A stretch of 64,000 nucleotides of DNA from Neoechinorhynchus agilis (Eukaryota > Animalia > Acanthocephala), in the NCBI GenBank assembly GCA_051530055.1, contig CM121342.1:1336797-1400796 (forward strand), in the 5' to 3' direction. The notes below the pieces were generated by a model. It had not been told where the DNA came from, made no database searches, and worked only from the letters and a program-made list of their open reading frames with translations. Shown piece by piece: positions 7,161 through 56,213 of this stretch; positions within the stretch are counted from its first letter, which is position 1, and the number at the start of each line of letters is the position of its first letter. The position numbers and the translations under genes were made by a program.

Positions 7161-7595
7161 TCATTTATTTAAAATATTTCCTAAGCTTTTTGCTTACCTC
7201 TTCAGTTATATCTACAAATTAAGCTAAAGTCAAAATTGGACTATAGGCGTGGATCCGGGGGTTCGCCAAGCCGTACCAGCTGCGGCGTGGACTTCGGACG
7301 AGCATTAATAATACAGCCTATTGCTAATTTATGGAGGAGAATGGTAATGGAGGCAATATACTTCACAGGGAATGTAACCGTGGACGGTAACAAAGCGAAT
7401 CATATGCTGGTACTTCCGAAAATTCTTGACAAAACGAAAACGTTAGACGCGGATCCACGCCTGTAGTCCAATTTTGACTTGTAGCTTAATTTGTAGATAT
7501 AACTGAAGAGGTAAGCAAAAAGCTTACGAAATATTTTAAAATAAATGATCAACACCACCAACAACAATCCGGGGGAAAAACATCACCAAACTCGA
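7116..7595. mobile_element. Foldback/MITE-like element with ~140-bp inverted arms (7116-7257 / 7450-7595)
   Basis: The arms are imperfect reverse complements (e.g. tctacaaattaagct...ggcgtggatccg / cggatccacgcc...agcttaatttgtaga). The arm sequence is related to the hairpins at 33624, 44281 and 50702. Confidence 0.8.
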
Positions 7596-24699: not shown

Positions 24700-27200
24700 C
24701 AGCTCAGAGTCAATGAGAGCGGAAATCGAAGCTCGATTGCTATCGTGGATATTGGTAGCAATCTTACATTTTGTTTGTCCCAAGTGATGATTTTTTTCAA
24801 AATTTCAGGCTTAGTTCATCTGAACAACCGTGGCGAAAAGGGAATTCTGATGGGACCCAAATCTCATTAGCCAAATCAAAAATCAAAGTTCGATTACTTT
24901 CTTTGACATTGGCAGCAATCTGACAATCCATTTGTCCTAGCTGACGATTTTTCCTAATCTACCGATTTATTTCATTTAAATAACGTAAACGACGCTGCCG
25001 ATTCCAATTCGCGATAAGACGAAGCTTCCGCATTGTAAAGATCGAAAACTCTTTCTTTAAATTGGAATGAATTTTTTGTCTTCTACTCGCATTCTAGAAG
25101 ATTTACCTTAAAATGCTAGTCTCATTCCTTAAGAACTGCTCACGAGCCGACTTTCATGCCTTCGAGTATGCGAGCGACAAGTGCAAAAATTAAGAGTCAA
25201 TAAGAGCGGAAATCGAAGCTCGATTGCTATCGTGGATATTCGTAGCGATCTTACATTTCGTTGGTCCCAAGTGATGATTTTTTCAAAATTTCAGGCTTAG
25301 TTCATCTTAAAAACTGTGGCGAAAAAAGCATTCTGATGGGATCCAAATCTCATTAGCCAAATCAAAAATCAAAGTTCGATTATTTTCTTTGATATTGCCA
25401 GCGATCTGACAATCCATTTGTCCTAGCTGAAGATTTTTCCTAACCTACCGATTTATTTCATTTAAATAACGTAAACGACGCTGCCGATTCCAATTCGCGA
25501 TAAGACGAAGCTTCCGCATTGTAAAGATCAAAAACTCTTTCTTTAAATTGGAATGAATTTTTGTCTTTTACTCGCATTCTAGAAGACTTATGTTAAAATG
25601 ATAGCCTCATTCCTAAAGAACTGCTCACGAGCCGACTTTCATGCCTTCGAGTATGTTAGCGACAAGTTCAAAAATTATGAGTCAATAGGAGCGGAAATCG
25701 AAGCTCGATTGCTATCGTGGATATTGGTAGCAATCTTACATTTTGTTGGCCCCAAGTGATGATTTTTTCAAAATTTCAGGCTTAGTTCATCTGAACAACC
25801 GTGGCGAAAAAAGAATTCTGATGGGACCCAAATCTCATTAGCCAAATCAAAAATCAAAGTTCGATTATTTTCTTTGATATTGGCAGCGATCTGGCAATCC
25901 ATTTGTCCTAGCTGATGAATTTTCCTAATCTAGCGATTTATTTGATTTAAACAGCGTGAACAACGCTGCCGATTCCAATTCGCGATAAGACGGAGCTTCC
26001 GCATTGTAAAGATCAAAAACTCTTTCTTTAAATTGGAATGAATTTTTGTCTTTTACTCGCATTCTAGAAGATTTATGTTGAAATGATAGTCTCATTCCTT
26101 AAGAACTGCTCACGAGCCGACTTTCATGCCTTCGAGTATGCGAGCGACAAGTTCAAAAATTATGAGTCAATAGGAGCGGAAATCGAACTGCGTTCGCTAT
26201 CCTGCATTTTGGTTGCGATCCTACATTCCGTTGATCCCAGGTGATTATTTTTTTCAAAATTTCAGGCTTAGTTCATCTGAACAACCATGGCGAAAAAAGC
26301 ATTCTGATGGGACCCAAATCTCATTAACCAAATCAAAAATCAAAGTTCGATTACTTTCTTTGATATTGGCAGCAATCGGGTAATCCATTTGTCCAAGCTG
26401 GTGATTTTTCCTAATCTACCGATTTATTTCATTTAAACAACGTGAACGATGCTGCTGATTAAAATTCGCGTTAAGAAGAAGCTTCCGCAGTGTAAAGATC
26501 GAAAACTATTTCTTTAAATTAGAATGAATTTTTATCTTTTCCTCGCATTGATGAAGATTTTAGCTAAAATGATAGTCTCTTTCCATAAGAACTGCTCACG
26601 AGCCGACTTTCATGCCTTCGAGTATGCGAGCGACAAGTTAAAAAATTGAGAGTCAATAAGAGCGGAAATCGAACTTCGATTGCTACCCTGGATATTGGTA
26701 GCGTTCGGACATTCTGTTGGTCCCAAGTCATGATTTTTTTAAAAATTTCAGGCTTAGTTCATCTGAACAACCGTGGCGAAAAGGGAATTCTGATGGGACT
26801 TAAATCTCATTAGCCAAATCAAAAATCAAAGTTCGATTAATTTTTGGTATTCTCAGCGATCTGGCAATCCATTTGTCCTAGCTGATGATTTTTCCTAATC
26901 TACCGATTTATTTCATTTAAACAACGTAAACGACGCTGCCGATTCCTATTCTCGATAATAGATCGAAAACTCTTTATTTAAATTGGAATGAATTTTTCTC
27001 TTTTACTCGCATTCCAGAAGATTTTAGCTAAAATGATAAAGTTTCATTCCTTAAGAACTGCTCACGAGTCGACTTTCATGCCTTCGGGCATGCGAGCGGC
27101 AAGTTCAAAAATTTTGAGTCAATAAGAATGGAAATCGAAGCTCGATTGCTATCCCGGATATTGGTAGCGATCGGACATTCCATTTGTCTAAAGATTGAAC
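24700..27200. repeat. ~485-bp tandem satellite, about 5 units
   Basis: gagcggaaatcgaa anchors near 24718, 25204, 25689, 26172, 26660 and 27126. Related pieces occur at 43720-44090, 48755-48975 and 55590-56213 (inverted). Confidence 0.95.
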
Positions 27201-27387
27201 TGTTCATGTTGGTCATTAATGGCGAATAAGTTGAAAAATCCGATATTTCTGTACATTCTTTATCTTTTATCAAGGTTGCTTCCCCTCGCAATCATCTTCA
27301 GAAATGGGTGAGAAAAAAGCTAGAAAGAGAGCTTCTCGTCATCTTCAGAAATGGGTGAGAAAAAAGCTAGAAAGAGAGCTTCTCGTA

Positions 27388-30300
27388 AAGCTGGTCGCTT
27401 TATTCTTGGCTCGCTAGGTGGAATTCGACGATGTGAGAGAGCATGTCAAGTCGAAGCCGAGGCAACTCAAGGGCAATGATTGCGTTTTCTGCTCAGTATC
27501 CTGCAAGGACTGTGACTATGTCGATATTGGACAAATACCACAATCCCCATCGGACTCCTGATAAAAGCTGGTCGCTTTATTCTTCGCTCGCTAGGTGGAA
27601 TTCTACGATGTAGAGCATGTCGTCGAAGCCGAGGCAACTCAAGGGCAATGATTGCGTTTTTCTGCTCAGTATCCTGCAAGGATTGTGACTATGTCTATAT
27701 TGACAAATACCACAATCCCCATCGGACTCTGATAAAAGCTGGTCGCTTTATTCTTGGCTCGCTAGGTGGAATTGACGATGTGAGAGAGTGCGTCGGGTCA
27801 GCGAGAGGCAACTCAAGGGCAATGATTGCGTGGTTCACTCAGTATCCTGTAAGCACTGTGACCATGCTCATATTGGACAAATGCTACAATCCTCATCGGA
27901 CTCTGATAAAAGCTGGTCGCTTTATTCTTCGCTCGCTAGGTGGAATTCGACGATGTGAGAGAGCATGTCAAGTCGAAGCCAGGCAACTCAAGGGCAATGA
28001 TTGCGTTTTCTGCTCAGTATCCTGCAAGGATTGTGACTATGTCTATATTGGACAAATGCCACAATCCCCATCGGACTCCTGATAAAAGCTGGTCGCTTTA
28101 TTCTTGGCTCGCTAGGTGGAATTCGATGATGTGAGAGAGCATGTCAAGTCGAAGCCGAGGCAACTCAAGGGCAATGATTGCGTTTTCTGCTCAGTATCCT
28201 GCAAGGACTGTGACTATGTCGATATTGGACAAATACCACAATCCCCATCGGACTCCTGATAAATGCTGGTCGCTTTATTCTTCGCTCGCTAGGTGGAATT
28301 CGACGATGTGAGAGAGCATGTCAAGTCGAAGCCGAGGCAACTCAAGGGCAATGATTGCGTTTTCTGCTCAGTATCCTGCAAGGATTGTGACTATGTCTAT
28401 ATTGGACAAATAACACAATCCCCATCGGACTCCTGATAAAAGCTGGTCGCTTTATTCTTGGCTCGCTAGGTGGAATTCGACGATGTGAGAGAGCATGTCA
28501 AGTCGAAGCAGAGGCAACTCAAGGGCAATGATTGCGTGGTCTACTCAGTATCCTGCAAGCACTGTGACCATGCCTATATTGGACAAATGCCACAATCCCC
28601 ATCGGACTCCTGATAAAAGCTGGTCGCTTTATTCTTCGCTCGCTAGGTGGAATTCTACGATGTGAGAGAGCATGTCAAGTCGAAGCAGAGGCAACTCAAG
28701 GGCAATTATTGCGTTTTCTGCTCAGTATCCTGCAAGGATTGTGACCATGTCGATATTGGACAAATACCACAATCCCCATCGGACTCCTAATAAAAGCTGG
28801 TCGCTTTATTCTTTGCTCGCTAGGTTGATTTCGACGATGTGAGAGCGCATGTCAAGTCGAAGCCGAGGCAACTCAAGGGCAATGATTGCGTTTTCTGCTC
28901 AGTACCCTGCAAGGACTGTGACTATGTCGATATTGGACAAATGCCACAATCCCTGCCGAACTCCTGATAAAATAAAAGCTGGTCGCTTTATTCTTGGCTC
29001 GCTAGGTTGAATTCGACGATGTGAGAGAGCATGTCAAGTCGAAGCCGAGGCAACTCAAGGGAAATTATTGCGTTTTCTGCTCAGTACCCTGCAAGGACTG
29101 TGACTATGTCGATATTGGACAAATGCCACAATCCCCATCGGACTCCTGATAAAAGCTGTCGCTTTATTCTTCGCTCGCTAGGTGGAATTCGACGATGTGA
29201 GAGAGCATGTCAAGTCGAAGCCGAGGCAACTCAAGGGCAAATGATTGCGTTTTCTGCTCAGTACTCTGCAGGGACCCTGACCATGTCGATATTGGACAAA
29301 TGCCACAATCCCCATCGGACTCCTGATAAAAGCTGGTCGCTTTATTCTTGGCTCGCTAGGTTGATTTCGACGATGTGAGAGAGCATGTCAAGTCGAAGCC
29401 GAGGCAACTCAAGGGAAATTATTGCGTTTTCTGCTCAGTACCCTGCAAGGACTGTGACTATGTCGATATTGGACAAATGCCACAATCCCCATCGGACTCC
29501 TGATAAAAGCTGGTCGCTTTATTCTTCGCTCGCTAGGTGGAATTCGACGATGTGAGAGAGCATGTCAAGTCGAAGCCGAGGCAACTCAAGGGCAATGATT
29601 GCGTTTTCTGCTCAGTACTCTGCAGGGACTGTGACCATGTCGATATTGGACAAATGCCACAATCCCCATCGGACTCCTGATAAAAGCTGGTCGCTTTATT
29701 CTTGGCTCGCTAGGTTGATTTCGACGATGTGAGAGAGCATGTCAAGTCGAAGCCGAGGCAACTCAAGCGGAAATTATTGCGTTTTCTGCTCAGTAATTCG
29801 CAAGGACTGTGACTATGTCGATATTGGACAAATGCCACAATCCCCATCGGACTCCTGATAAAAGCTGGTCGCTTTATTCTTGGCTCGCTAGGTGGTAATC
29901 GACGATGTGAGAGAGCATGTCAAGTCGATGCCGGAGCAACTCAAGGGAAATTATTGCGTTTTCTGCTCAGTACCCTGCAAGGACTGTGACCATGTCTATA
30001 TTGGACAAATGCCACAATCCCCATCGGACTCCTGATTAAAGCTGGTCGCTTTATTCTTCGCTCGCTAGGTGGAATTCGACGATGTGAGAGAGCATGTCAA
30101 GTCGAAGCCGAGGCAACTCAAGGGCAATGATTGCGTTTTCTGCTCAGTACTCTGCAGGGACTGTGACCATGCCTATATTGGACAAATGCCACAATCCCCA
30201 TCGGACTCCTGATAAAAGCTGGTCGCTTTATTCTTCGCTCGCTAGGTGGAATTCTACGATGTGAGAGAGCATGTCAAGTCGAAGCCGGAGCAACTCAAGG

Positions 30301-31590
30301 GAAATTATTGCGTGGTCTACTCAGTATCCTGCAAGGACTGTGACTATGTCGATATTGGACGAATCCCACAACCCCCGCCGAACTGATAAAAGCTGGTCGC
30401 TTTATTCTTCGCTCGCTAGGTGGAATTCGACGATGAGAGACATGTCATCGAAGCCGAGTGCAACTCAAGGGCAATGATTGCGTTGCTCAGTATCCTGCAA
30501 GGATTGTGACTATGTCTATATTGGACAAATACCACAATCCCCATCGGACTCCTGATAAAAGCTGGTCGCTTTTATCTTCGCTCGCTAGGTGGGAATTCGA
30601 CGATGCGGAGAGAGCATGTCAAGTCGAAGCCGAGGCAACTCAAGGGCAATGATTGCGTTTTCTGCTCAGTATCCTGCAAGGATTGTGACTATGTCTATAT
30701 TGGACAAATGCCACAATCCCCATCGGACTCCTGATAAAAGCTGGTCGCTTTATTCTTGGCTCGCTATATGGAATTCGACGATGTGAGAGAGCATGTCAAG
30801 TCGAAGCCGAGGCAACTCAAGGGCAATGATTGCGTTTTCTGCTCAGTATCCTGCAAGGATTGTGACCATGTCGATATTGGACAAATGCCACAATCCCCAT
30901 CGGACTCCTGATAAAAGCTGGTCGCTTTATTCTTCGCTCGCTAGGTGGAATTCGACGATGTGAGAGAGCATGTCAAGTGGAAGCCGAGGCAACTCAAGGG
31001 CAATGATTGCGTTTTCTGCTCAGTATCCTGCAAGGACAGTGACCATGTCGATATTGGACAAATGCCACAATCCCCATCGGACTCCTGATAAAAGCTGGTC
31101 GCTTTATTCCTCGATCGCGAGGTGGAATTCGACGATATGAGAGAGCATGTCAAGTCGAAGCCGAGGCAACTCAAGGGCAATGATTGCGTTTTCTGCTCAG
31201 TATCCTGCAAGGACAGTGACCATGTCGATATTGGACAAATGCCACAATCCCCATCGGACTCCTGATAAAAGCTGGTCGCTTTATTCCTCGATCGCTAGGT
31301 GGAATTCGACGATATGAGAGAGCATGTCAAGTCGAAATCGGAGCAACTCAAGGCAATGATTGCGTGGTCTGCTCAGTATCCTGCAAGGACTGTGACTATG
31401 TCATATTTGACAAATACCACAATCCCCATCGGACTCCTGATAAAAGCTGGTCGCTTTATTCCTCGATCGCTAGGTGGAATTCGACGATATGAGAGAGCAT
31501 GTCAAGTCGAAGCCGAGGCAACTCAAGGGCAATGATTGCGTTTTCTGCTCAGTATCCTGCAAGGACTGTGACCATGTCGATATTGGACAA
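27388..31590 (+). repeat. 177-bp tandem satellite (~24 units) derived from a Penelope-like element linker/GIY-YIG N-terminus
   Basis: aagct anchors at 28086, 28263, 28440 and 28617 give a period of 177. The unit encodes ...VKSKPRQLKGNDCVFCSVSCKDCDYVYIGQ, and the last unit continues into the rest of the endonuclease. Confidence 0.9.
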
Positions 31591-31860
31591 ACAAAGCATG
31601 AGTGCGGCAGCATGAATACGCAATCAAACGGAGTGATGTGTCATCGGCCATCTTCAACGACGCCGTGCAAAACGACCATACAATCGACTTCGGAGGAGCA
31701 ATGGCGAAAATGGTTGAGAACGGGATCCAGAATTTCTTCTCATGCTGTAATACCCGGTAGGAGTGAATTTGAGCAGCGTAATTGATGGTTCGGCGCACAC
31801 GAGTGCAGGGATCAAATGAGCTCGGAGGTCGATGCCTCGAAAATTTGCATGTTTACAAAT
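31520..31860 (+). mobile_element. Penelope-like element 3' end (GIY-YIG endonuclease remnant)
   Basis: SCKDCDHVDIGQTK, then after a frameshift VRQHEYAIKRSDVSSAIFNDAVQNDHTIDFGGA. This matches the PLE pattern CxxC...YIGxT.R.L..R..EH....H.IDF. Confidence 0.75.
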
Positions 31861-31918
31861 AAATTTCGAGGAGGGAAAAACTTGCTTTGTATAGAAAGGT
31901 AGTGGAATCCATCGAAGG

Positions 31919-32157
<239 letters not shown>

Positions 32158-32489
32158 CGAAGGAAAAACTCGGTCGAATGATTAACTATTCATTATTGGC
32201 GATTTATGATGATTTAAAAATAGCGAGCTTTTCTTTTCTGCAAACTCCCTTTGCGTTATTCTTGCTGCATACGGATCCCAGTCATTTCCTCTTGATTCTA
32301 TTTCCCACATAAAGTAAAACACGAATCTTTCTTCACAATAAAAAATAATATACGATTATGACTCCGAATAGAAATTCTAGAAGCCTTATAAGTTTTGTAC
32401 TGCTTTTTTAAAGCGTTTGACGCAATATTTATTTGTGATTTAAGAAGCCGTTTCTAGATGTGTTGATTCAAAAAAATGAAACACGAATT

Positions 32490-33300
32490 ACTACATCGGT
32501 CCACAGAAAGCCAACTGAAACAAATAATTATATACTTTGGAATATTGCTCATTGTAAAAGCACAAAAGTTGTATATTCAAATCTTTATGCAGTGAGGAGT
32601 GCCTCACATATGAAATATAAAAGTTGAAACGAATTTCCAGGAAGTTGGGGGACCCCAAAGATATTCTTAATTCAGCGCGAGAGCAAGTGGACCGTGCGAG
32701 GAACATACAGTCAAAAGAAACAGTCATGAGCCCGAATCGAATGAATCTACTACGCATTGAAGTGCCGGACATAGGACCGCAGACCAACTGTTGACGAAAT
32801 AAAATTTCAAGAACAATTAAGAACAGCGGTCTGCCGATAAAATGTCAATTTTATTTTTGACTTTCTGTACTTATAGGAAACATCATTTCCCGGAAATTCA
32901 GGGAAGTAGAAAGGAGGGCTGTTGCCTACAAAGTTTCTTGTAGCCAATGCAATAGCAATTACATCGGATAAACAGGCCATAATCTGTATACGAGATTGGC
33001 GGAGCGTAAACGGTCCAAGACCCAGAAAGTGGTATCGTCGAATATCGCCGACAAAACATTGGTTTTAGCAAATGAACATAATAACATTCGACGCCTAATT
33101 AAGGAAACGTTCTTAAACATAGAACAGAAACCGTATATAAACAACTGGGGAGTTTAAAATCTCTGTCTGCACAGCTAAAAAAATGTTACAACACAATAAA
33201 CCATAAGAGCGTGTGAGAGCGAAATAATTACTCATCCACTTGTATTTGAGAACTGATGATGAATTCGACGAGGTTCGCAGAACGTCTTTAATCAATAATC
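32490..33300 (+). mobile_element. Second, unrelated Penelope-like element remnant (RT C-terminal linker plus GIY-YIG)
   Basis: Plus strand AVAYKVSCSQCNSNYIG*TGHNLYTRLAE...NIRRLIKETFLNIEQKPYIN, with an upstream GPQT...KCQF linker. An inverted copy lies at ~51205-52015. Confidence 0.7.
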
Positions 33301-33623
33301 ATTTACCGGGTGCAGACCTAAACAAAAATTCCAAGTTTTTTGCTGCTTTTTGTTTTTAAAGCGTTTGACGCAAAATTTATTTGTGATTTAAGAAGCGATT
33401 CTCGAAACCAAAAGTCCTCTAATATTTTCTTCGTTTGAAATATCAGCGAGTCATTTTATTTTGAATGTAAGGAATTTTAATAATTTCAATCACAGTTTAA
33501 TTGCGTTAAAATTCAAAATCAAGGAATAGAAATAGTCATTGCGGTGTTAAATGCGTGGTTAAACAGTTAATAGAACGCAGTTGATTTTGGTCGAAAATCT
33601 TGCTCCTAAACATAAAAAGAATG

Positions 33624-33804
33624 TTGTGCGTTGGCGAATCCTTTCCCCGGTGTTTTCGTTACTCATTTATTTTAGAAATATTTCGGAACTCACATATTTA
33701 AAAAGTTACAAACAATAGACTGAAGAGGCAAGGAAAACCTTGCGAAATATTTCAAAAATAAATGAGTAACGAAAACATCGGGGAAAGGATTCGCCAACGC
33801 ACAA
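33624..33804. mobile_element. MITE-like hairpin with ~61-bp TIRs
   Basis: ttgtgcgttggcgaatcctttccccgg...cgaaatatttc / ...cggggaaaggattcgccaacgcacaa. Copies at 50702-50882, 44281-44497 (partial) and ~24340-24450 (decayed). Confidence 0.8.
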
Positions 33805-34116
33805 TCAAATTCACCCCGAGGACAATGACATATGACAATAAAAAGAATATTTATAACTTTAATTACAGAGCGACCAATCAGACTGCGCATTTCACATGTC
33901 AGATTGCGGAGCCTGCCGAAAAATAATTGTGCATTTAAAAGCCATGTTGTCTTTTTAAACTACTCAATATTTTAAAAGGTTCCTTTATTGCAATTATCCA
34001 TGCCAGCGCCATCACTCTTATTTTAGCGAAAGGTTATGATTCCCAAAAGTTAGAAGAATACTCACTTTAAGAAATAAATTTACCTCTACCAAAAATATAG
34101 AGCGAATCGAACATAT

Positions 34117-34655
34117 ATGTGAGAAAATTCAATCAAAAATTCAACTTTATATTGTACAAAGTATAGACGGCTACATTGCTCGTAAAAACGGTTCTTTGGA
34201 TTAACTTGTAAGCGAAATGGGCAATAAAATGTTAACCAAGTATGAGAGATTTTTGGAAGTTGTTTATACAATCATTATGGGTCGTAGGACTTATGATGAA
34301 ATCATGACAATCTTAAGTCCTAATAAGTGGCCATATCGAAACAAGAAGACATGCGTTTGCGCCCGTTCACCTGAAAAATACTTATCATCCAATCACCATA
34401 TCGTATTCGTAAAGTTTGATCGGAGTTTTTTAGAATTCACCCAAAATAATTCAAAGAGAAATATCTGGAATTATGGTGGAGCTTCGGTTTTTCACGATTG
34501 CATTCGTAATAGAATGACAGACGAAATGCTCATTTGTACTATCTCAATTATTCTCGACGATGGAATCTGCCTTTTAAACAACAAAATTATGTCGTAAAGG
34601 AAATTGTTGCTTTCGAAAAAGGATCGCTTGTCAAGTATCATAGATTAAAAAAACT
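34117..34655 (+). pseudogene. Bacterial-type dihydrofolate reductase family / RibD C-terminal domain pseudogene
   Basis: KIQLYIVQSIDGYIARKNGSLD*L...TIIMGRRTYDEI...WPYRNK...NIWNYGGASV...DEMLICTISIILDDGI, then a frameshift to ...EKGSLVKY. The conserved W is TAA at 34202-34204. No introns. Confidence 0.85.
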
Positions 34656-41720: not shown

Positions 41721-41771
41721 AAAAAATATGGAACGCTTCACGATTTTGCGTGTCATCCTTGCGCAGGGGCC

Positions 41772-41807
<36 letters not shown>

Positions 41808-41828
41808 GTGCGGCGCCGAAGCAACCAC
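41721..41828 (-). ncRNA. U6: U6 spliceosomal snRNA gene, second identical copy
   Basis: Same 108-nt sequence as 18768-18875, with ~520 bp of near-identical upstream flank. Confidence 0.97.
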
Positions 41829-44090: not shown

Positions 44091-46522
44091 GAAGGAATCA
44101 ATCGCATTTGAATGTTTAATTTATTTTTTAGGTAAAGATTCATATTGATGTATTTTCAATCGGAAATCTCTACTTCAATTTGCTTGTTTAGTTGGTCTTC
44201 GCGTTTATAGAGTTTACTTCTATAACAATTTCAACATTAGAGTATAATGTCATATATCATTGTCCTCGGGGTGAATTTGATTGTGCGTTGGCCGCAAGAG
44301 GTGTGTGCGGACGAAACTCCCCACACTTCGGGTATTAGCAAACCCGCGGATCTGAGCTACATCCAGACGTGACCGGCTGTGCATGCCGTATGTGTCCTCC
44401 ATTTTAGATAGACTGAAGAGGCAAGGAAAACCTTGCGAAATATTTCTAAAATAAATGAATAACGACAACACCGGGGACAGGATTCGCCAACGCACAATTA
44501 AAGAGTATAAGGCGTTCTATTATTTATTGTGATGGCATATTTGGGAGTATTTATGAACCGATCAAAATAATGTAAAATAGATGGTATTAAAGGGCTAACG
44601 TGTCGCCGTCAATAATAACGCCTTTAATTCAGTGTCAGAAATTCTTAAAATTGTTCTAATAAAGTCACAGCAGCTTATTCCCTGAAAACTGTATTAAGAA
44701 ACATCAATTCTGCCATTTAAAGTTGTTAATTGAACAATTTTAATTCCATTTTGTGCAAACTAAGTAGATTTGTAAATATTATTGAAGTTTTAGTAAACTT
44801 TTATGGATCTCGGTCAAGTTCGCCGCCTATAATGTAAATGTCGAAATATGAAGAAATTAATAAGGCCACCTTTTAAAGAGCATACGAGCAAAAAATTGGA
44901 AATTTTGACTCTATGTAGTGCGGAAATATAAAACGACTTGCATTATTTAACACTAACAATGCAACTGGATTCCCACAGAGAATTTTTGCTTAATCATGTC
45001 ATACAGAAAAAATTCTATAGCGAAATACGTTTAAGATATAGTTATAAGCAATAGGAGATTAGAGATATCAGATTAAGTTCAGTAAAAAATTTGATTCAAA
45101 GATTCTGCCTCTAACTGAATTGATTCGAAATTACTGATTCCGATGAACAGCAGTGATTAAAAATATGTGAAGAATGCCCTTGAAAAATAAGAAATTATCT
45201 AGGTTTGTCTTGAAACAAAGAATAGAAATTTGTTCCTTTGTATTTCATGAAAATTAATGTGGCCTGACAACATTTTTCCAGTAAACTTCATTAGCTAAGC
45301 GTTACCATACTATTATATAAGAATTTTAATGAACAATTTCTGCTCATATTCCAAGTCATAGGAATTCACAATATTTAAATGATTTTTTCAATTCCTTAAC
45401 AAAGCAAGATTGTTATAAAAAAGGGGAATCGTTCTAAAAAAGTAGACACACATAAGGGGTAACTTTTTTGCATGTATAAATCTCAAATATGCTTTTTATA
45501 CAAGGCTCATATCCTTCGATATTGATAGTTAGATATCGATAATGATGTATGATTTGATGAGACTGGATTCTATTAAGATTTTAGAGCAAGATGTATACTT
45601 TTATCAACGTTGCATTATGCAAGAATCAATTATTCTTCTAAAGGACGATTTTCAGCTGCGGATCATTTTTTAAATTTCGAACAGCGATATTGTGAAGGGT
45701 ATCATTAATGCAATTAACGTAGTCAGACCACAACTAAAATAGAAATACCTTTCGTAAGATGATGTTCGGAATATTTTTTGCATAATAACTATCGGTTTAT
45801 TGATAACCTACTAAATACATCAAGCCGTAGATGAAGGTTGCATTTTAAGTGACAAATATTTAAGAAAGTGAAAGTTCATGTGCTCGATTATACAAACGAT
45901 TATTGCCTAATCCAAGATTTGAAGATAATTTAAATAGAATGAACAGAATAAAAGGCATGCTGCAAAACGCCGGCACCGTTGAATATTTTTATGAAAAACA
46001 GTTACATTCTAACTTTTTTTACTTCATGACTTTAAGTATTCAAAATAATAAGACATTTACGAGGCAACCAGCGAGGCATCTTCGCTATGCTACTTGGTTC
46101 AGTCACATACTAATATTTAAATGAAACTGGAATTTGAAAAACAAAATTATAATATCTTTAACGGGACGTATTATGTTTATCTCAGTTTGTGCTAGAAAAT
46201 AGGCTTTCAATAATCCTGCGGCAAAATAAGCGAACATTTAATTAACCTGAACGCCCGCCCAGATTTCGTATAATAAAATTACAAAATTCGGCGAAAACCA
46301 ACAACGAAGAAAAGAGTTTGAAATAGTTGACTATGTAGCCATTCAATTCAGAAGTAATTGCGAATATAAATTCGGATTAATGCATCCTGATTGCATACAA
46401 AGTTGTTTAATGCAATACTTGAACCCTTCTCAACTTGCGAATTTGAATGAGCAGCTACTACATCGATAACTAGGTTTATATATTTCGATAAAAACTACGC
46501 TAATAATATCATCATTATCTCA

Positions 46523-50389: not shown

Positions 50390-52669
50390 ATATGTTCGAT
50401 TCGCTCTATATTTTTGGTAGAGGTAAATTTATTTCTTAAAGTGAGTATTCTTCTAACTTTTGGGAATCATAACCTTTCTCTAAAATAAGAGTGATGGCGC
50501 TGGCATGGATAATTGCAATAAAGGAACCTTTTAAAATATTGAGTAGTTTAAAAAGACAACATGGCTTTTAAATGCACAATTATTTTTCGGCAGGCTCCGC
50601 AATCTTACATGTGAAATGCGCAGTCTGATTGGTCGCTCTGTAATTAAAGTTATAAATATTCTTTTTATTGTCATATATCATTGTCCTCGGGGTGAATTTG
50701 ATTGTGCGTTGGCGAATCCTTTCCCCGATGTTTTCGTTACTCATTTATTTTTGAAATATTTCGCAAGATTTTCCTTGCCTCTTCAGTCTATTGTTTGTAA
50801 CTTTTTAAATATGTGAGTTCCGAAATATTTCTAAAATAAATGAGTAACGAAAACACCGGGGAAAGGATTCGCCAACGCACAACATTCTTTTTATGTCTAG
50901 GAGCAAGATTTTCGACCAAAATCAACTGCGTTCTATTAACTGTTTAACCACGCATTTAACACCGCAATGACTATTTCTATTCCTTGATTTTGAATTTTAA
51001 CGCAATTAAACTGTGATTGAAATTATTAAAATTCCTTACATTCAAAATAAAATGACTCGCTGATATTTCAAACGAAGAAAATATTAGAGGACTTTTGGTT
51101 TCGAGAATCGCTTCTTAAATCACAAATAAATTTTGCGTCAAACGCTTTAAAAACAAAAAGCAGCAAAAAACTTGGAATTTTTGTTTAGGTCTGCACCCGG
51201 TAAATGATTATTGATTAAAGACGTTCTGCGAACCTCGTCGAATTCATCATCAGTTCTCAAATACAAGTGGATGAGTAATTATTTCGCTCTCACACGCGCT
51301 TATGGTTTATTGTGTTGTAACATTTTTTTAGCTGTGCAGACAGAGATTTTAAACTCTCCAGTTGTTTATATACGGTTTCTGTTCTATGTTTAAGAACGTT
51401 TCCTTAATTAGGCGTCGAATGTTATTATGTTCATTTGCTAAAACCAATGTTTTGTCGGCGATATTCGACGATACCACTTTCTGGGTCTTGGACCGTTTAC
51501 GCTCCGCCAATCTCGTATACAGATTATGGCCTGTTTATCCGATGTAATTGCTATTGCATTGGCTACAAGAAACTTTGTAGGCAACAGCCCTCCTTTCTAC
51601 TTCCCTGAATTTCCGGGAAATGATGTTTCCTATAAGTACAGAAAGTCAAAAATAAAATTGACATTTTATCGGCAGACCGCTGTTCTTAATTGTTCTTGAA
51701 ATTTTATTTCGTCAACAGTTGGTCTGCGGTCCTATGTCCGGCACTTCAATGCGTAGTAGATTCATTCGATTCGGGCTCATGACTGTTTCTTTTGACTGTA
51801 TGTTCCTCGCACGGTCCACTTGCTCTCGCGCTGAATTAAGAATATCTTTGGGGTCCCCCAACTTCCTGGAAATTCGTTTCAACTTCTGGATTTCATATGT
51901 GAGGCACTCCTCACTGCATAAAGATTTGAATATACAACTTTTGTGCTTTTACAATGAGCAATATTCCAAAGTATATAATTATTTGTTTCAGTTGGCTTTC
52001 TGTGGACCGATGTAGTAATTCGTGTTTCATTTTTTTGAATCAACACATCTAGAAACGGCTTCTTAAATCACAAATAAATATTGCGTCAAACGCTTTAAAA
52101 AAGCAGTACAAAACTTATAAGGCTTCTAGAATTTCTATTCGGAGTCATAATCGTATATTATTTTTTATTGTGAAGAAAGATTCGTGTTTTACTTTATGTG
52201 GGAAATAGAATCAAGAGGAAATGACTGGGATCCGTATGCAGCAAGAATAACGCAAAGGGAGTTTGCAGAAAAGAAAAGCTCGCTATTTTTAAATCATCAT
52301 AAATCGCCAATAATGAATAGTTAATCATTCGACCGAGTTTTTCCTTCGAGGGATTCCACTACTTTTCTATACAAAGCAAGTTTTTCCCTCCTCGAAATTT
52401 ATTTGTAAACATGCAAATTTTCGAGGCATCGACCTCCGAGCTCATTTGATCCCTGCACTCGTGTGCGCCGAACCATCAATTACGCTGCTCAAATTCACTC
52501 CTACCGGGTATTACAGCATGAGAAGAAATTCTGGATCCCGTTCTCAACCATTTTCGCCATTGCTCCTCCGAAGTCGATTGTATGGTCGTTTTGCACGGCG
52601 TCGTTGAAGATGGCCGATGACACATCACTCCGTTTGATTGCGTATTCATGCTGCAGCACTCATGCTTTG

Positions 52670-55585
52670 TTTGTCCAATATCGACATGGTCACAGTCCTT
52701 GCAGGATACTGAGCAGAAAACGCAATCATTGCCCTTGAGTTGCCTCGGCTTCGACTTGACATGCTCTCTCACATCGTCGAATTCCACCTAGCGATCGAGG
52801 AATAAAGCGACCAGCTTTTATCAGGAGTCCGATGGGGATTGTGGCATTTGTCCAATATAGACATGGTCACAGTCCTTGCAGGGTACTGAGCAGAAAACGC
52901 AATAATTTCCCTTGAGTTGCTCCGGCATCGACTTGACATGCTCTCTCACATCGTCGATTACCACCTAGCGAGCGAAGAATAAAGCGACCAGCTTTTATCA
53001 GGAGTCCGACGGGGATTGTGGTATTTGTCAAATATAGACATGGTCACAGTCCTTGCAGGATACTGAGCAGAAAACGCAATCATTGCCCTTGAGTTGCCTC
53101 GGCTTCGACTTGACATGCTCTCTCACATCGTCGAATTCAACCTAGCGAGCCAAGAATAAAGCGACCAGCTTTTATCAGGAGTCCGATGGGGATTGTGGCA
53201 TTTGTCCAATATCGACATAGTCACAGTCCTTGCAGGGTACTGAGCAGAAAACGCAATAATTTCCCTTGAGTTGCCTCGGCTTCGACTTGACATGCTCTCT
53301 CACATCGTCGAATTCAACCTAGCGAGCCAAGAATAAAGCGACCAGCTTTTATCAGGAGTCCGATGGGGATTGTGGCATTTGTCCAATATCGACATGGTCA
53401 GTCCCTGCAGAGTACTGAGCAGAAAACGCAATCATTGCCCTTGAGTTGCCTCGGCTTCGACTTGACATGCTCTCTCACATCGTCGAATTCCACCTAGCGA
53501 CCGAAGAATAAAGCGACCAGCTTTTATCAGGAGTCCGATGGGGATTGTGGCATTTGTCCAATATCGACATAGTCACAGTCCTTGCAGGGTACTGAGCAGA
53601 AAACGCAATAATTTCCCTTGAGTTGCCTCGGCTTCGACTTGACATGCTCTCTCGCATCGTCGAAATCAACCTATGAGCCAAGAATAAAGCGACCAGCTTT
53701 TATCAGGAGTCCGATGGGGATTGTGGCATTTGTCCAATATCGACATGGTCACAGTCCCTGCAGAGTACTGAGCAGAAACGCAATCATTGCCTCTGAGTTG
53801 CCTCGGCTTCGACTTGACATGCCTTCTCACATCGTCGAATTCCACCTAGCGAGCGAAGAATAAAGCGACCAGCTTTTATCAGGAGTCCGATGGGGAATGT
53901 GGCATTTGTCCAATATCGACATAGTCACAGTCCTTGCAGGGTACTGAGCAGAAAACGCAATAATTTCCCTTGAGTTGCCTCGGCTTCGACTTGACATGCT
54001 CTCTCACATCGTCGAATTCAACCTAGCGAGCCAAGAATAAAGCGACCAGCTTTTATCAGGAGTCCGATGGGGATTGTGGCATTTGTCCAATATCGACATG
54101 GTCACAGTCCCTGCAGAGTACTGAGCAGAAAACGCAATCATTGCCCTTGAGTTGCCTCGGCTTCGACTTGACATGCTCTCTCACATCGTCGAATTCCACC
54201 TAGCGAGCGAAGAATAAAGCGACCAGCTTTTATCAGGAGTCCGATGGGGATTGTGGCATTTGTCCAATATCGACATAGTCACAGTCCTTGCAGGGTACTG
54301 AGCAGAAAACGCAATCATTGCCCTTGAGTTGCCTCGGCTTCGACTTGACATGCGCTCTCACATCGTCGAAATCAACCTAGCGAGCAAAGAATAAAGCGAC
54401 CAGCTTTTATTAGGAGTCCGATGGGGATTGTGGTATTTGTCCAATATCGACATGGTCACAATCCTTGCAGGATACTGAGCAGAAAACGCAATAATTGCCC
54501 TTGAGTTGCCTCTGCTTCGACTTGACATGCTCTCTCACATCGTAGAATTCCACCTAGCGAGCGAAGAATAAAGCGACCAGCTTTTATCAGGAGTCCGATG
54601 GGGATTGTGGCATTTGTCCAATATAGGCATGGTCACAGTGCTTGCAGGATACTGAGTAGACCACGCAATCATTGCCCTTGAGTTGCCTCTGCTTCGACTT
54701 GACATGCTCTCTCACATCGTCGAATTCCACCTAGCGAGCCAAGAATAAAGCGACCAGCTTTTATCAGGAGTCCGATGGGGATTGTGTTATTTGTCCAATA
54801 TAGACATAGTCACAATCCTTGCAGGATACTGAGCAGAAAACGCAATCATTGCCCTTGAGTTGCCTCGGCTTCGACTTGACATGCTCTCTCACATCGTCGA
54901 ATTCCACCTAGCGAGCCAAGAATAAAGCGACCAGCTTTTATCAGGAGTCCGATGGGGATTGTGGGATTTGTCCAATATAGACATAGTCACACTCCTTGCA
55001 GGATACTGAGCAGAAAACGCAATCATTGCCCTTGAGTTGCCTCGGCTTCGACTTGACATGCTCTCTCACATCGTCGAATTCCACCTAGCGAGCGAAGAAT
55101 AAAGCGACCAGCTTTTATCAGGAGTCCGATGGGGATTGTGGTATTTGTCCAATATAGACATGGTCACAGTCCCTGCAGAGTACTGAGCAGAAATCGCAAT
55201 TGCCCTTGAGTTGCCTCGGCTTCGACTTGACATGCTCTCTCACATCGTCGAATTCCACCTAGCGAGTGCAGAATGAAGCGACCAGCTTTTATTAGGAGTT
55301 CGGCGGGGATTGTGGCATTTGTCCAATATCGACATAGTCACAGTCCTTGCAGGATACTGAGTTGACCACGCAATAATTTCCCTTGAGTTGCTCCGGCATC
55401 GACTTGACATGCTCTCTCACATCGTCGATTACAACTTAACGAATGCAAAATGAAGCAACCAGCTTTTATTTGTTCGGCGGGGGTTGTGGGATTCGTCCAA
55501 TATAGACATGGTCACAGTCATTGCAGAGTGCAGAGTAAACGACGCAATCATTGTCCTTGAGTTGCTCCGGCTTCGACTTGACATG
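52670..55585 (-). repeat. 177-bp PLE-derived satellite, inverted copy (~16 units)
   Basis: Reverse complement of the 27388-31590 units, followed by the GIY-YIG remnant at ~52400-52740. Confidence 0.9.
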
Positions 55586-56213
55586 CTCTCGCCAAGGGAA
55601 TGTACAGAAATATCGGATTTTTCAACTCATTCGCCATTAATGACCAACATGAACAGTTCAATCTTTAGACAAATGGAATGTCCAATCGCTACCAATATCC
55701 ATGATAGCAATCGAGCTTCGATTTCCATTCTTATGTACTCTAAATTTTTGAACTTGCCGCTCGCATGCCCGAAGGCATGAAAGTCGGCTCGTGAGCAGTT
55801 CTTAAAGAATGAGACTTTATCATTTTAGCTAAAATCTTCATCAATGCGAGGAAAAGATAAAAATTCAATCTAATTTAAAGAAATAGTTTTCGATCTTTAC
55901 ATTGCGGAAGCTTCGTCTTATCGCGAATTGGAATCAGCAACGTCGTTTACGTTATTTAAATTAAATAAATCGGTATATTAGGAAAAACCATCAGCTAGAG
56001 CAGATGGATTGTCAGATTGCTGCCAATATCAAAGAAAGTAATCGAACTTTGATTTTTTATTTGGCTAATGAGATTTGGGTCCCATCAGAATGCTTTTTTC
56101 GCCATAGCTTTTCAGATGAACTAAGGCAAAAATTTCGAAAAAAATCATCACTAGGGACCAACGGAATGTCCGATCGCTACCAATATCCAGGATAGAAATC
56201 GAGCTTCGATTTC

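Follow-up and report, generated by a model that had tools for sequence, protein, structure and literature searches.

A local 177-bp tandem repeat in the acanthocephalan Neoechinorhynchus agilis, built in part from the start of a Penelope-like nuclease

The genome of the acanthocephalan Neoechinorhynchus agilis contains a tandem repeat with a 177-bp unit, whose largest array (array 1) lies at positions 27387-31591 of a 64-kb stretch of DNA, here called the window. The window corresponds to contig C2:1336797-1400796 of the published assembly (102 contigs, 46.2 Mbp, N50 16.4 Mbp; PMC12690905), the 102 contigs totalling 46,219,100 bp, and coordinates given without a contig refer to it. Each unit is composed of an 87-bp 5' half, which we call X, and a 90-bp 3' half, B1. 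By sequence similarity, B1 comes from a Penelope-like element (PLE), at the start of its GIY-YIG nuclease, and the last unit of array 1 is still joined to a fragment of that element. We propose, with a probability that we put at about 0.6, that the array is a local non-coding tandem repeat seeded by a dead PLE fragment, which acquired a B1-X-B1 duplication and was then expanded by unequal exchange.

Tandem Repeats Finder (TRF) reported array 1 on the forward strand with a period of 177 bp, 23.8 copies, 92% matches and 2% indels, in agreement with the roughly 24 units counted in an initial annotation made from the letters of this stretch; unit chopping and B1 homology gave the division of each unit into X and B1. 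The units diverge by about 9%. The closest pair within the array is 99.4% identical and no two units are identical, which rules out assembler stutter, and the 64-kb window contains zero N. Stops in the three forward frames had already led the initial annotation to discard a repeat protein, and we found them in all six: every frame of the 177-bp majority unit is interrupted by 2-6 stops per two units, the frames of array 1 contain 47-56 each, none of the six stays open through the consensus and the longest open run in array 1 or in its twin, array 2 (see below), is 188 codons. A repeat-protein gene was ruled out on these grounds. Pfam returned no match for pieces of the unit, which are too short for such a search. 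No hammerhead core was present in the units and no Rfam family reached its gathering score, the best match being mir-383 (E=0.49, 17.5 bits against a gathering score of 70); a retrozyme or hammerhead unit was ruled out by the lack of a self-cleaving hammerhead core. Folding of the unit RNA was no better than that of shuffled sequences (z = 0.05 for the forward and -1.68 for the reverse strand). The 177-bp repeat is non-coding and has no evident function.

The origin of B1 (31502-31591 in the last unit) was assessed by genome search and alignment. It encodes the last ~10 codons of a PLE linker and the first ~19 codons of the nuclease, with GIY (here VVY), CxxC and YIGQ. Nineteen dispersed and decayed members of a single PLE family align with the window at 76-93% identity, beginning at 31502, and the DNA of B1 and of the sequence after the last unit is 80-93% identical to theirs; the similarity spans B1, the remainder of the nuclease (31592-31729) and the 3' untranslated region (3'UTR) up to a common 3' terminus, and in every dispersed copy the homology starts abruptly at 31502. 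B1 is present in every unit of all four arrays found in the genome, with 79-92% identity to these parents. One dispersed copy retains an open C-terminus of 253 codons (L012:4601-5359). This parent open reading frame (ORF) matches the unit by tblastn with E=1.3e-14, reads VVY-SVP-CKDC-NHV-YIGQ and then RQHE..H.., and aligns (E=5e-30) with residues 575-786 of a full-length, 826-aa PLE from the same genome that carries the Pfam domains RVT_1 and GIY-YIG. The nuclease stretch of full-length relatives matches PF01541 with E values of 2e-4 to 2e-6, and the parent alone does so weakly (E=0.064). The units themselves retain CxxC and, for the most part, GIY and YIG in degraded form. Together, these similarities show that B1 and the sequence that follows the last unit derive from a PLE with a C-terminal GIY-YIG nuclease. 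Neither an Rfam hammerhead nor a CUGANGA...GAAA core was detected in the tail attached to array 1 or in three parent copies. Reverse transcriptase (RT) is present in the related copies L013 and L020 and absent from the array locus, where a 486-bp local repeat and a short filler lie upstream of the array; because RT is missing there, the locus holds a PLE fragment and not a whole element.

The other half of the unit gave a different result. X (31415-31501 in the last unit) carries a peptide, TIPIGLL..., that the initial annotation had taken for the PLE linker preceding the nuclease. The sequence directly upstream of B1 in the parent (..LIPYHPAGVNLNSV) differs from X, and that immediately 5' of B1 in the dispersed parents (..SSVNLIPYHPAGVNLNSV) is unlike it. 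Searched as DNA against the whole genome, X has no match outside the arrays at E<=10, and its 38-aa peptide matches the arrays alone among hundreds of PLE copies. Its three forward frames, scored with a hidden Markov model (HMM) built on the linkers of 20 PLE lineages in the genome, reached at best 0.7 bits, with a 95th percentile of 1.5 for shuffles; Smith-Waterman alignment of X to the parent region stayed at shuffle level, and tblastn of X against 14 PLE ORFs gave no match. The identification of X as a PLE linker was rejected on this set of searches. When reverse-complemented, X gives repeated alignments to the 80 nt that precede B1, with z of 1-3 and ~60% identity, a weak lead on which we base no claim. 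We also compared the fused 86-aa frame of the unit with 1.84 billion proteins using HMMER, and the hits were limited to the gene model of the locus itself and a pair of unrelated repeat proteins; this search recovered no PLE protein even through the B1 half and has no power on the question of X. Because a different sequence precedes B1 in the parent, the unit does not appear to be a contiguous internal PLE segment, and it is a chimera of PLE coding sequence (B1) and sequence not recognisably PLE (X). The derivation of the unit from a PLE GIY-YIG segment, as first proposed, therefore holds for B1 and is not supported for X.

As the initial annotation had noted, the last unit of array 1 alone runs on through the remaining nuclease sequence (VRQHEY...NDHTIDF) to the 3' end of the element. 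Alignment, BLAST to the dispersed copies and translations place this remainder, in phase with the last unit, at 31592-31923 on the forward strand. The nuclease remainder contains a 13-bp frameshifting deletion after YIGQT. Next comes a piece of 42 bp (31738-31779) that shares 83% identity with the segment that in the parent normally precedes B1 and stands in place of ~88 bp of the nuclease C-terminus, and then by the 3'UTR (31780-31923), which has a 32-bp deletion. The PLE fragment attached to array 1 is thus decayed and rearranged. Inspection of the sequence, TRF and a scan for runs further identified a simple-sequence insert in the tail (31924-32157, no strand assigned), made of an A-run, (AT)42 and a T-run of ~142-143. 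Direct repeats of 11 bp (CGAAGGAAAAA) border it at 31913-31923 and 32158-32168, and the twin of this region at ~52340 shows the empty site, without the A/AT/T insert. The simple sequence may truly have been inserted here, duplicating its target site, or it may be a homopolymer artefact of the long reads. Beyond it, at 32158-32179 on the forward strand, lie the last ~22 bp of the PLE fragment, recognised by alignment and by the 3' terminus common to the dispersed copies. This extension of the tail past the insert to ~32179 had escaped the initial annotation, as had the twin array and the two further arrays described below. Elsewhere in the genome, two arrays with a period of ~134 bp (G000:C1:5442455-5444579 and C1:5395421-5396432) match the last ~80 bp of the 3'UTR of the same PLE family (window 31843-31923); they are a separate tandem repeat derived from the PLE tail.

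Genome-wide counting placed the repeat in four arrays. TRF and a unit matrix identified array 2 at 52670-55590 on the reverse strand, with 16.6 copies of the same 177-bp unit, and sequence and alignments showed next to it, at 52327-52669 on the same strand, a twin of the PLE remainder and 3' end that lacks the microsatellite insert. Both belong to an inverted duplication of ~10 kb revealed by self-BLAST, with a left arm at 24706-34541 (forward strand) and a right arm at 56213-49965. Each arm comprises the 486-bp local repeat, the 177-bp array, the PLE tail and a 2,385-bp flank; the two flanks (32157-34541 and 52349-49965) are 99.5% identical, the arms have discrete ends and 15.4 kb separates them. 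Arrays 1 and 2 are recent inverted duplicates. A third array of ~11 units (~11.3) lies 58 kb upstream on the same contig (C2:1276819-1278816) at 82-87% identity, and the fourth is a remnant of 1.8 units on the unplaced contig C16. In all, there are ~54 units and ~9.5 kb of repeat in the 46,219,100 bp of the genome (~0.02%). The monomers are of fixed length and arranged head to tail, but ~54 units in four places is a low copy number for satellite DNA, and local tandem repeat or satellite seed is a better name for them than satellite.

Comparison of the arrays gave access to their turnover. Units 06-08 of array 1 are 100% identical to units 05-07 of array 2, and further short orthologous runs link the two arrays at several offsets. 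Units 08-14 of array 2 and 10-13 of array 1 alternate two variants, forming a two-unit higher-order repeat of 354 bp, and the units at the edges are the most diverged, with mean identities of 80-89%. From these patterns, the array is older than the inverted duplication, and blocks have since been gained or lost by unequal exchange or conversion, leading to 24 units on one side and 17 on the other. The two older arrays (upstream on C2, and on C16) end at the same point inside X. There, the C16 copy borders directly on the final 125 bp of a common dispersed repeat of ~890 bp. This family has one copy in the window at 32447-33334 and, at a first look, at least 990 candidates genome-wide. The idea that the array travelled as cargo of the ~890-bp repeat was not supported, since it is the 125-bp end fragment alone that abuts the C16 array, and the flank upstream of the C16 mini-array, considered as parent PLE sequence, scored no better than shuffles. 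The 486-bp tandem repeat that accompanies the arrays in both arms (24707-27179 and 55598-56213) has itself 5.1 copies in the left arm and 1.1 in the right; a third array of it lies just past the window end (G000:C2:1401623-1404590) and the repeat is confined to this ~120-kb neighbourhood.

At its 5' edge, array 1 is bordered by a filler (27283-27386, forward strand) in which TRF and a genome search recognised, in duplicate, the 5'UTR and initial 12 codons of the myosin regulatory light chain (MRLC) gene, the downstream copy being 47 bp long. The source is the MRLC gene on contig C1 (L032 2001-2057; G000:C1:7824926-7824982), with 100% identity over 57 bp. No such filler is found at array 2. Because it is identical to its source and missing from array 2, the filler is younger than the array. 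It looks like a templated filler copied from the 5' end of an abundant mRNA, either by an RT that switched templates or during break repair templated by RNA, and it shows that the array locus takes up filler DNA. The filler also contributes to a public gene model of N. agilis, KAL7669961.1 ('hypothetical protein ACOME3_004907', 189 aa; 27351-28079, forward strand), which begins at the captured MRLC ATG and threads array units with small introns. Since the frames are closed, this model is most likely an annotation artefact.

On the basis of these observations, we can sketch how a dead PLE fragment may have seeded the array. A PLE fragment, 5'-truncated or rearranged, would first have gained a B1-X-B1 duplication, either spanning the junction between its 5' end and the neighbouring DNA or including a filler of 87 bp. 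Such an event would have placed two direct repeats of 90 bp at a distance of 177 bp, between which unequal exchange or replication slippage could have expanded the array, and later segmental duplications would have copied the array and spread it locally. The identical units of the twins, the runs shared at an offset, the higher-order repeat, the diverged edges and the presence of 23.8 and 16.6 copies beside a 99.5% identical flank all favour unequal exchange at the DNA level as the mode of growth. Four points weigh against this scenario. No source was found for X, so that the founding event cannot be reconstructed; the intact original 5' junction is kept in none of the four arrays; the mosaic tail, where the 42-bp upstream piece follows what is left of the nuclease, and the capture of an mRNA 5' end are joins of the type made by a template-switching RT, which makes an RT-made founder possible; and the array lengths, as well as the inverted duplication, rest on one hybrid assembly from ~50 pooled worms (PMC12690905).

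The alternative that survives best keeps DNA exchange as a later modifier and assigns the founder to reverse transcription, the RT of a PLE (or another RT) having started at the PLE 3' end and produced, by switching templates in series or by copying a rolling circle, cDNA that was multimeric or mosaic. The polarity fits, with the array sitting 5' of the fragment from the PLE 3' end and agreeing with it in strand and phase; the PLE tail is a patchwork with a relocated upstream piece, and the 5' end of an abundant host mRNA was joined twice to the edge of array 1. Tandem and inverted complex insertions are known for PLEs (PMC8557442), and reverse transcription of circular RNA over more than one unit has been proposed for them (PMC4209133). 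However, neither the units nor the tail contain a hammerhead core able to make circular RNA, no target-site duplication was found around the whole structure, and the MRLC filler, being younger than the array, is not part of its founding. The ~9% divergence between units, the higher-order repeat and the diverged edges are also the pattern of DNA exchange. We regard an RT-made founder as doubtful, with a probability of about one in five. A more specific version, in which a Penelope-like RT primed at the PLE 3' end laid down the founding multimer while switching among several templates (PLE RNA, another RNA that yielded X and, at a later time, the 5' ends of host mRNAs, for instance MRLC), is slightly more doubtful still. 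Of the two origins suggested in the initial annotation, repeated re-priming during reverse transcription or unequal exchange, the array pattern favours the latter.

The initial annotation also implied that the unit is one contiguous internal PLE segment, linker and nuclease start, in which case X would be the true linker of a lost lineage. When 20 linkers are aligned, the X peptide bears a loose resemblance to the '..IP(Y/F)..' pattern seen in PLE linkers, at a roughly right spacing to the GIY motif, and, read in the frame of B1, X ends in five residues that resemble those of a distant relative (L029: LSEIL against MREHV). Against this, hundreds of PLE copies offer no DNA or peptide match to X, and both its linker-HMM score and its alignment to the parent are those of shuffles. 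B1 is ~84% identical to the parents and the identity falls to nothing exactly at the border between X and B1. Moreover, the two peptides on which the contiguous segment was based sit in different frames of array 1, TIPIGLLIKAGRFIPRSLG in one and CVFCSVSCKDCDHVDIGQ in another. We consider a linker from a lost lineage improbable. Least likely of all is an artefact of assembly, in which the array length or the inverted twin would be an expansion or an uncollapsed haplotype: the assembly was indeed built by MaSuRCA from ONT, HiFi and Illumina reads of ~50 individuals with Hi-C scaffolding (PMC12690905), the T-run of ~142 beside (AT)42 resembles a long-read artefact and the two arms differ as alleles might, but the units of array 1 differ by ~9% with none identical, the window is gap-free, the arms have discrete ends 15.4 kb apart and two more arrays, older ones at 82-87% identity, are found elsewhere in the genome.

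Two other features of the window were recorded. Minimal hammerhead-like cores (CTGAAGAG, a stem-loop and CGAAA), typical of Penelope ends, occur at 33720-33747, 44413-44440, 50759-50786, 7177-7205 and 7503-7531; some of them lie in the duplicated flank and others elsewhere in the window, and the pair at 7.2-7.5 kb is inverted. Two full-length U6 snRNA genes (111.9 bits) are located at 18769-18875 and 41722-41828 (-), each within tandem repeats of 241-247 bp that are also present at 1708-2434.

The locus offers a clean case, still attached to its donor, of a dead transposon fragment and unrelated DNA that have become the repeating unit of a tandem array. The speed at which such an array is reshuffled once duplicated is apparent from the 24 and 17 units that adjoin a flank 99.5% identical between the arms. 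In addition, the locus exposes KAL7669961.1 as a probably spurious public gene model and illustrates that short peptides read out of a repeat can over-call transposon homology. Should the RT-made founder prove true, the locus would record a retrotransposon enzyme making a satellite seed out of the very sequence that encodes its element. As it stands, the array does not change current knowledge of PLEs or satellites: tandem repeats and satellites that come from parts of retroelements, ORF pieces of LINEs among them, are already well documented (PMC9659126, PMC7004042), and this one is a new small example, with the start of a PLE nuclease as donor and a chimeric monomer.

Satellites derived from retroelement ORFs include PROsat and Pvc20, from LINE-1 ORF2, and chicken HinfI, from the CR1 3'UTR and part of ORF2 (PMC9659126). 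Like them, the 177-bp repeat uses a non-coding piece of a retroelement ORF as a head-to-tail monomer that evolves by unequal exchange; unlike them, its donor is a PLE, which provides half of the monomer, and its ~54 units include an array still attached to the donor fragment. Short arrays in or beside plant retrotransposons likewise serve as starting material for satellites (PMC7004042), but those seeds lie in the 3'UTRs of LTR elements and spread with the element, whereas the present array spread by local segmental duplication alone. Among PLEs, tandem and inverted 5'-truncated insertions with pLTRs (PMC8557442) similarly place a 5'-truncated fragment in tandem beside a PLE 3' end. The pLTR tandems repeat the 3' portion, end included, in ~2 copies, while here the 3' end is excluded, non-PLE DNA is included and the copies number 24. 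Finally, the PLE-derived arrays described so far, hammerhead arrays and non-LTR retrozymes, come from the hammerhead-bearing pLTR or 3' end (PMC4209133; bioRxiv 10.64898/2026.07.22.740005). Our array is, like these, a tandem array from a PLE, but its 177-bp unit combines a nuclease start with foreign sequence and has no hammerhead core.

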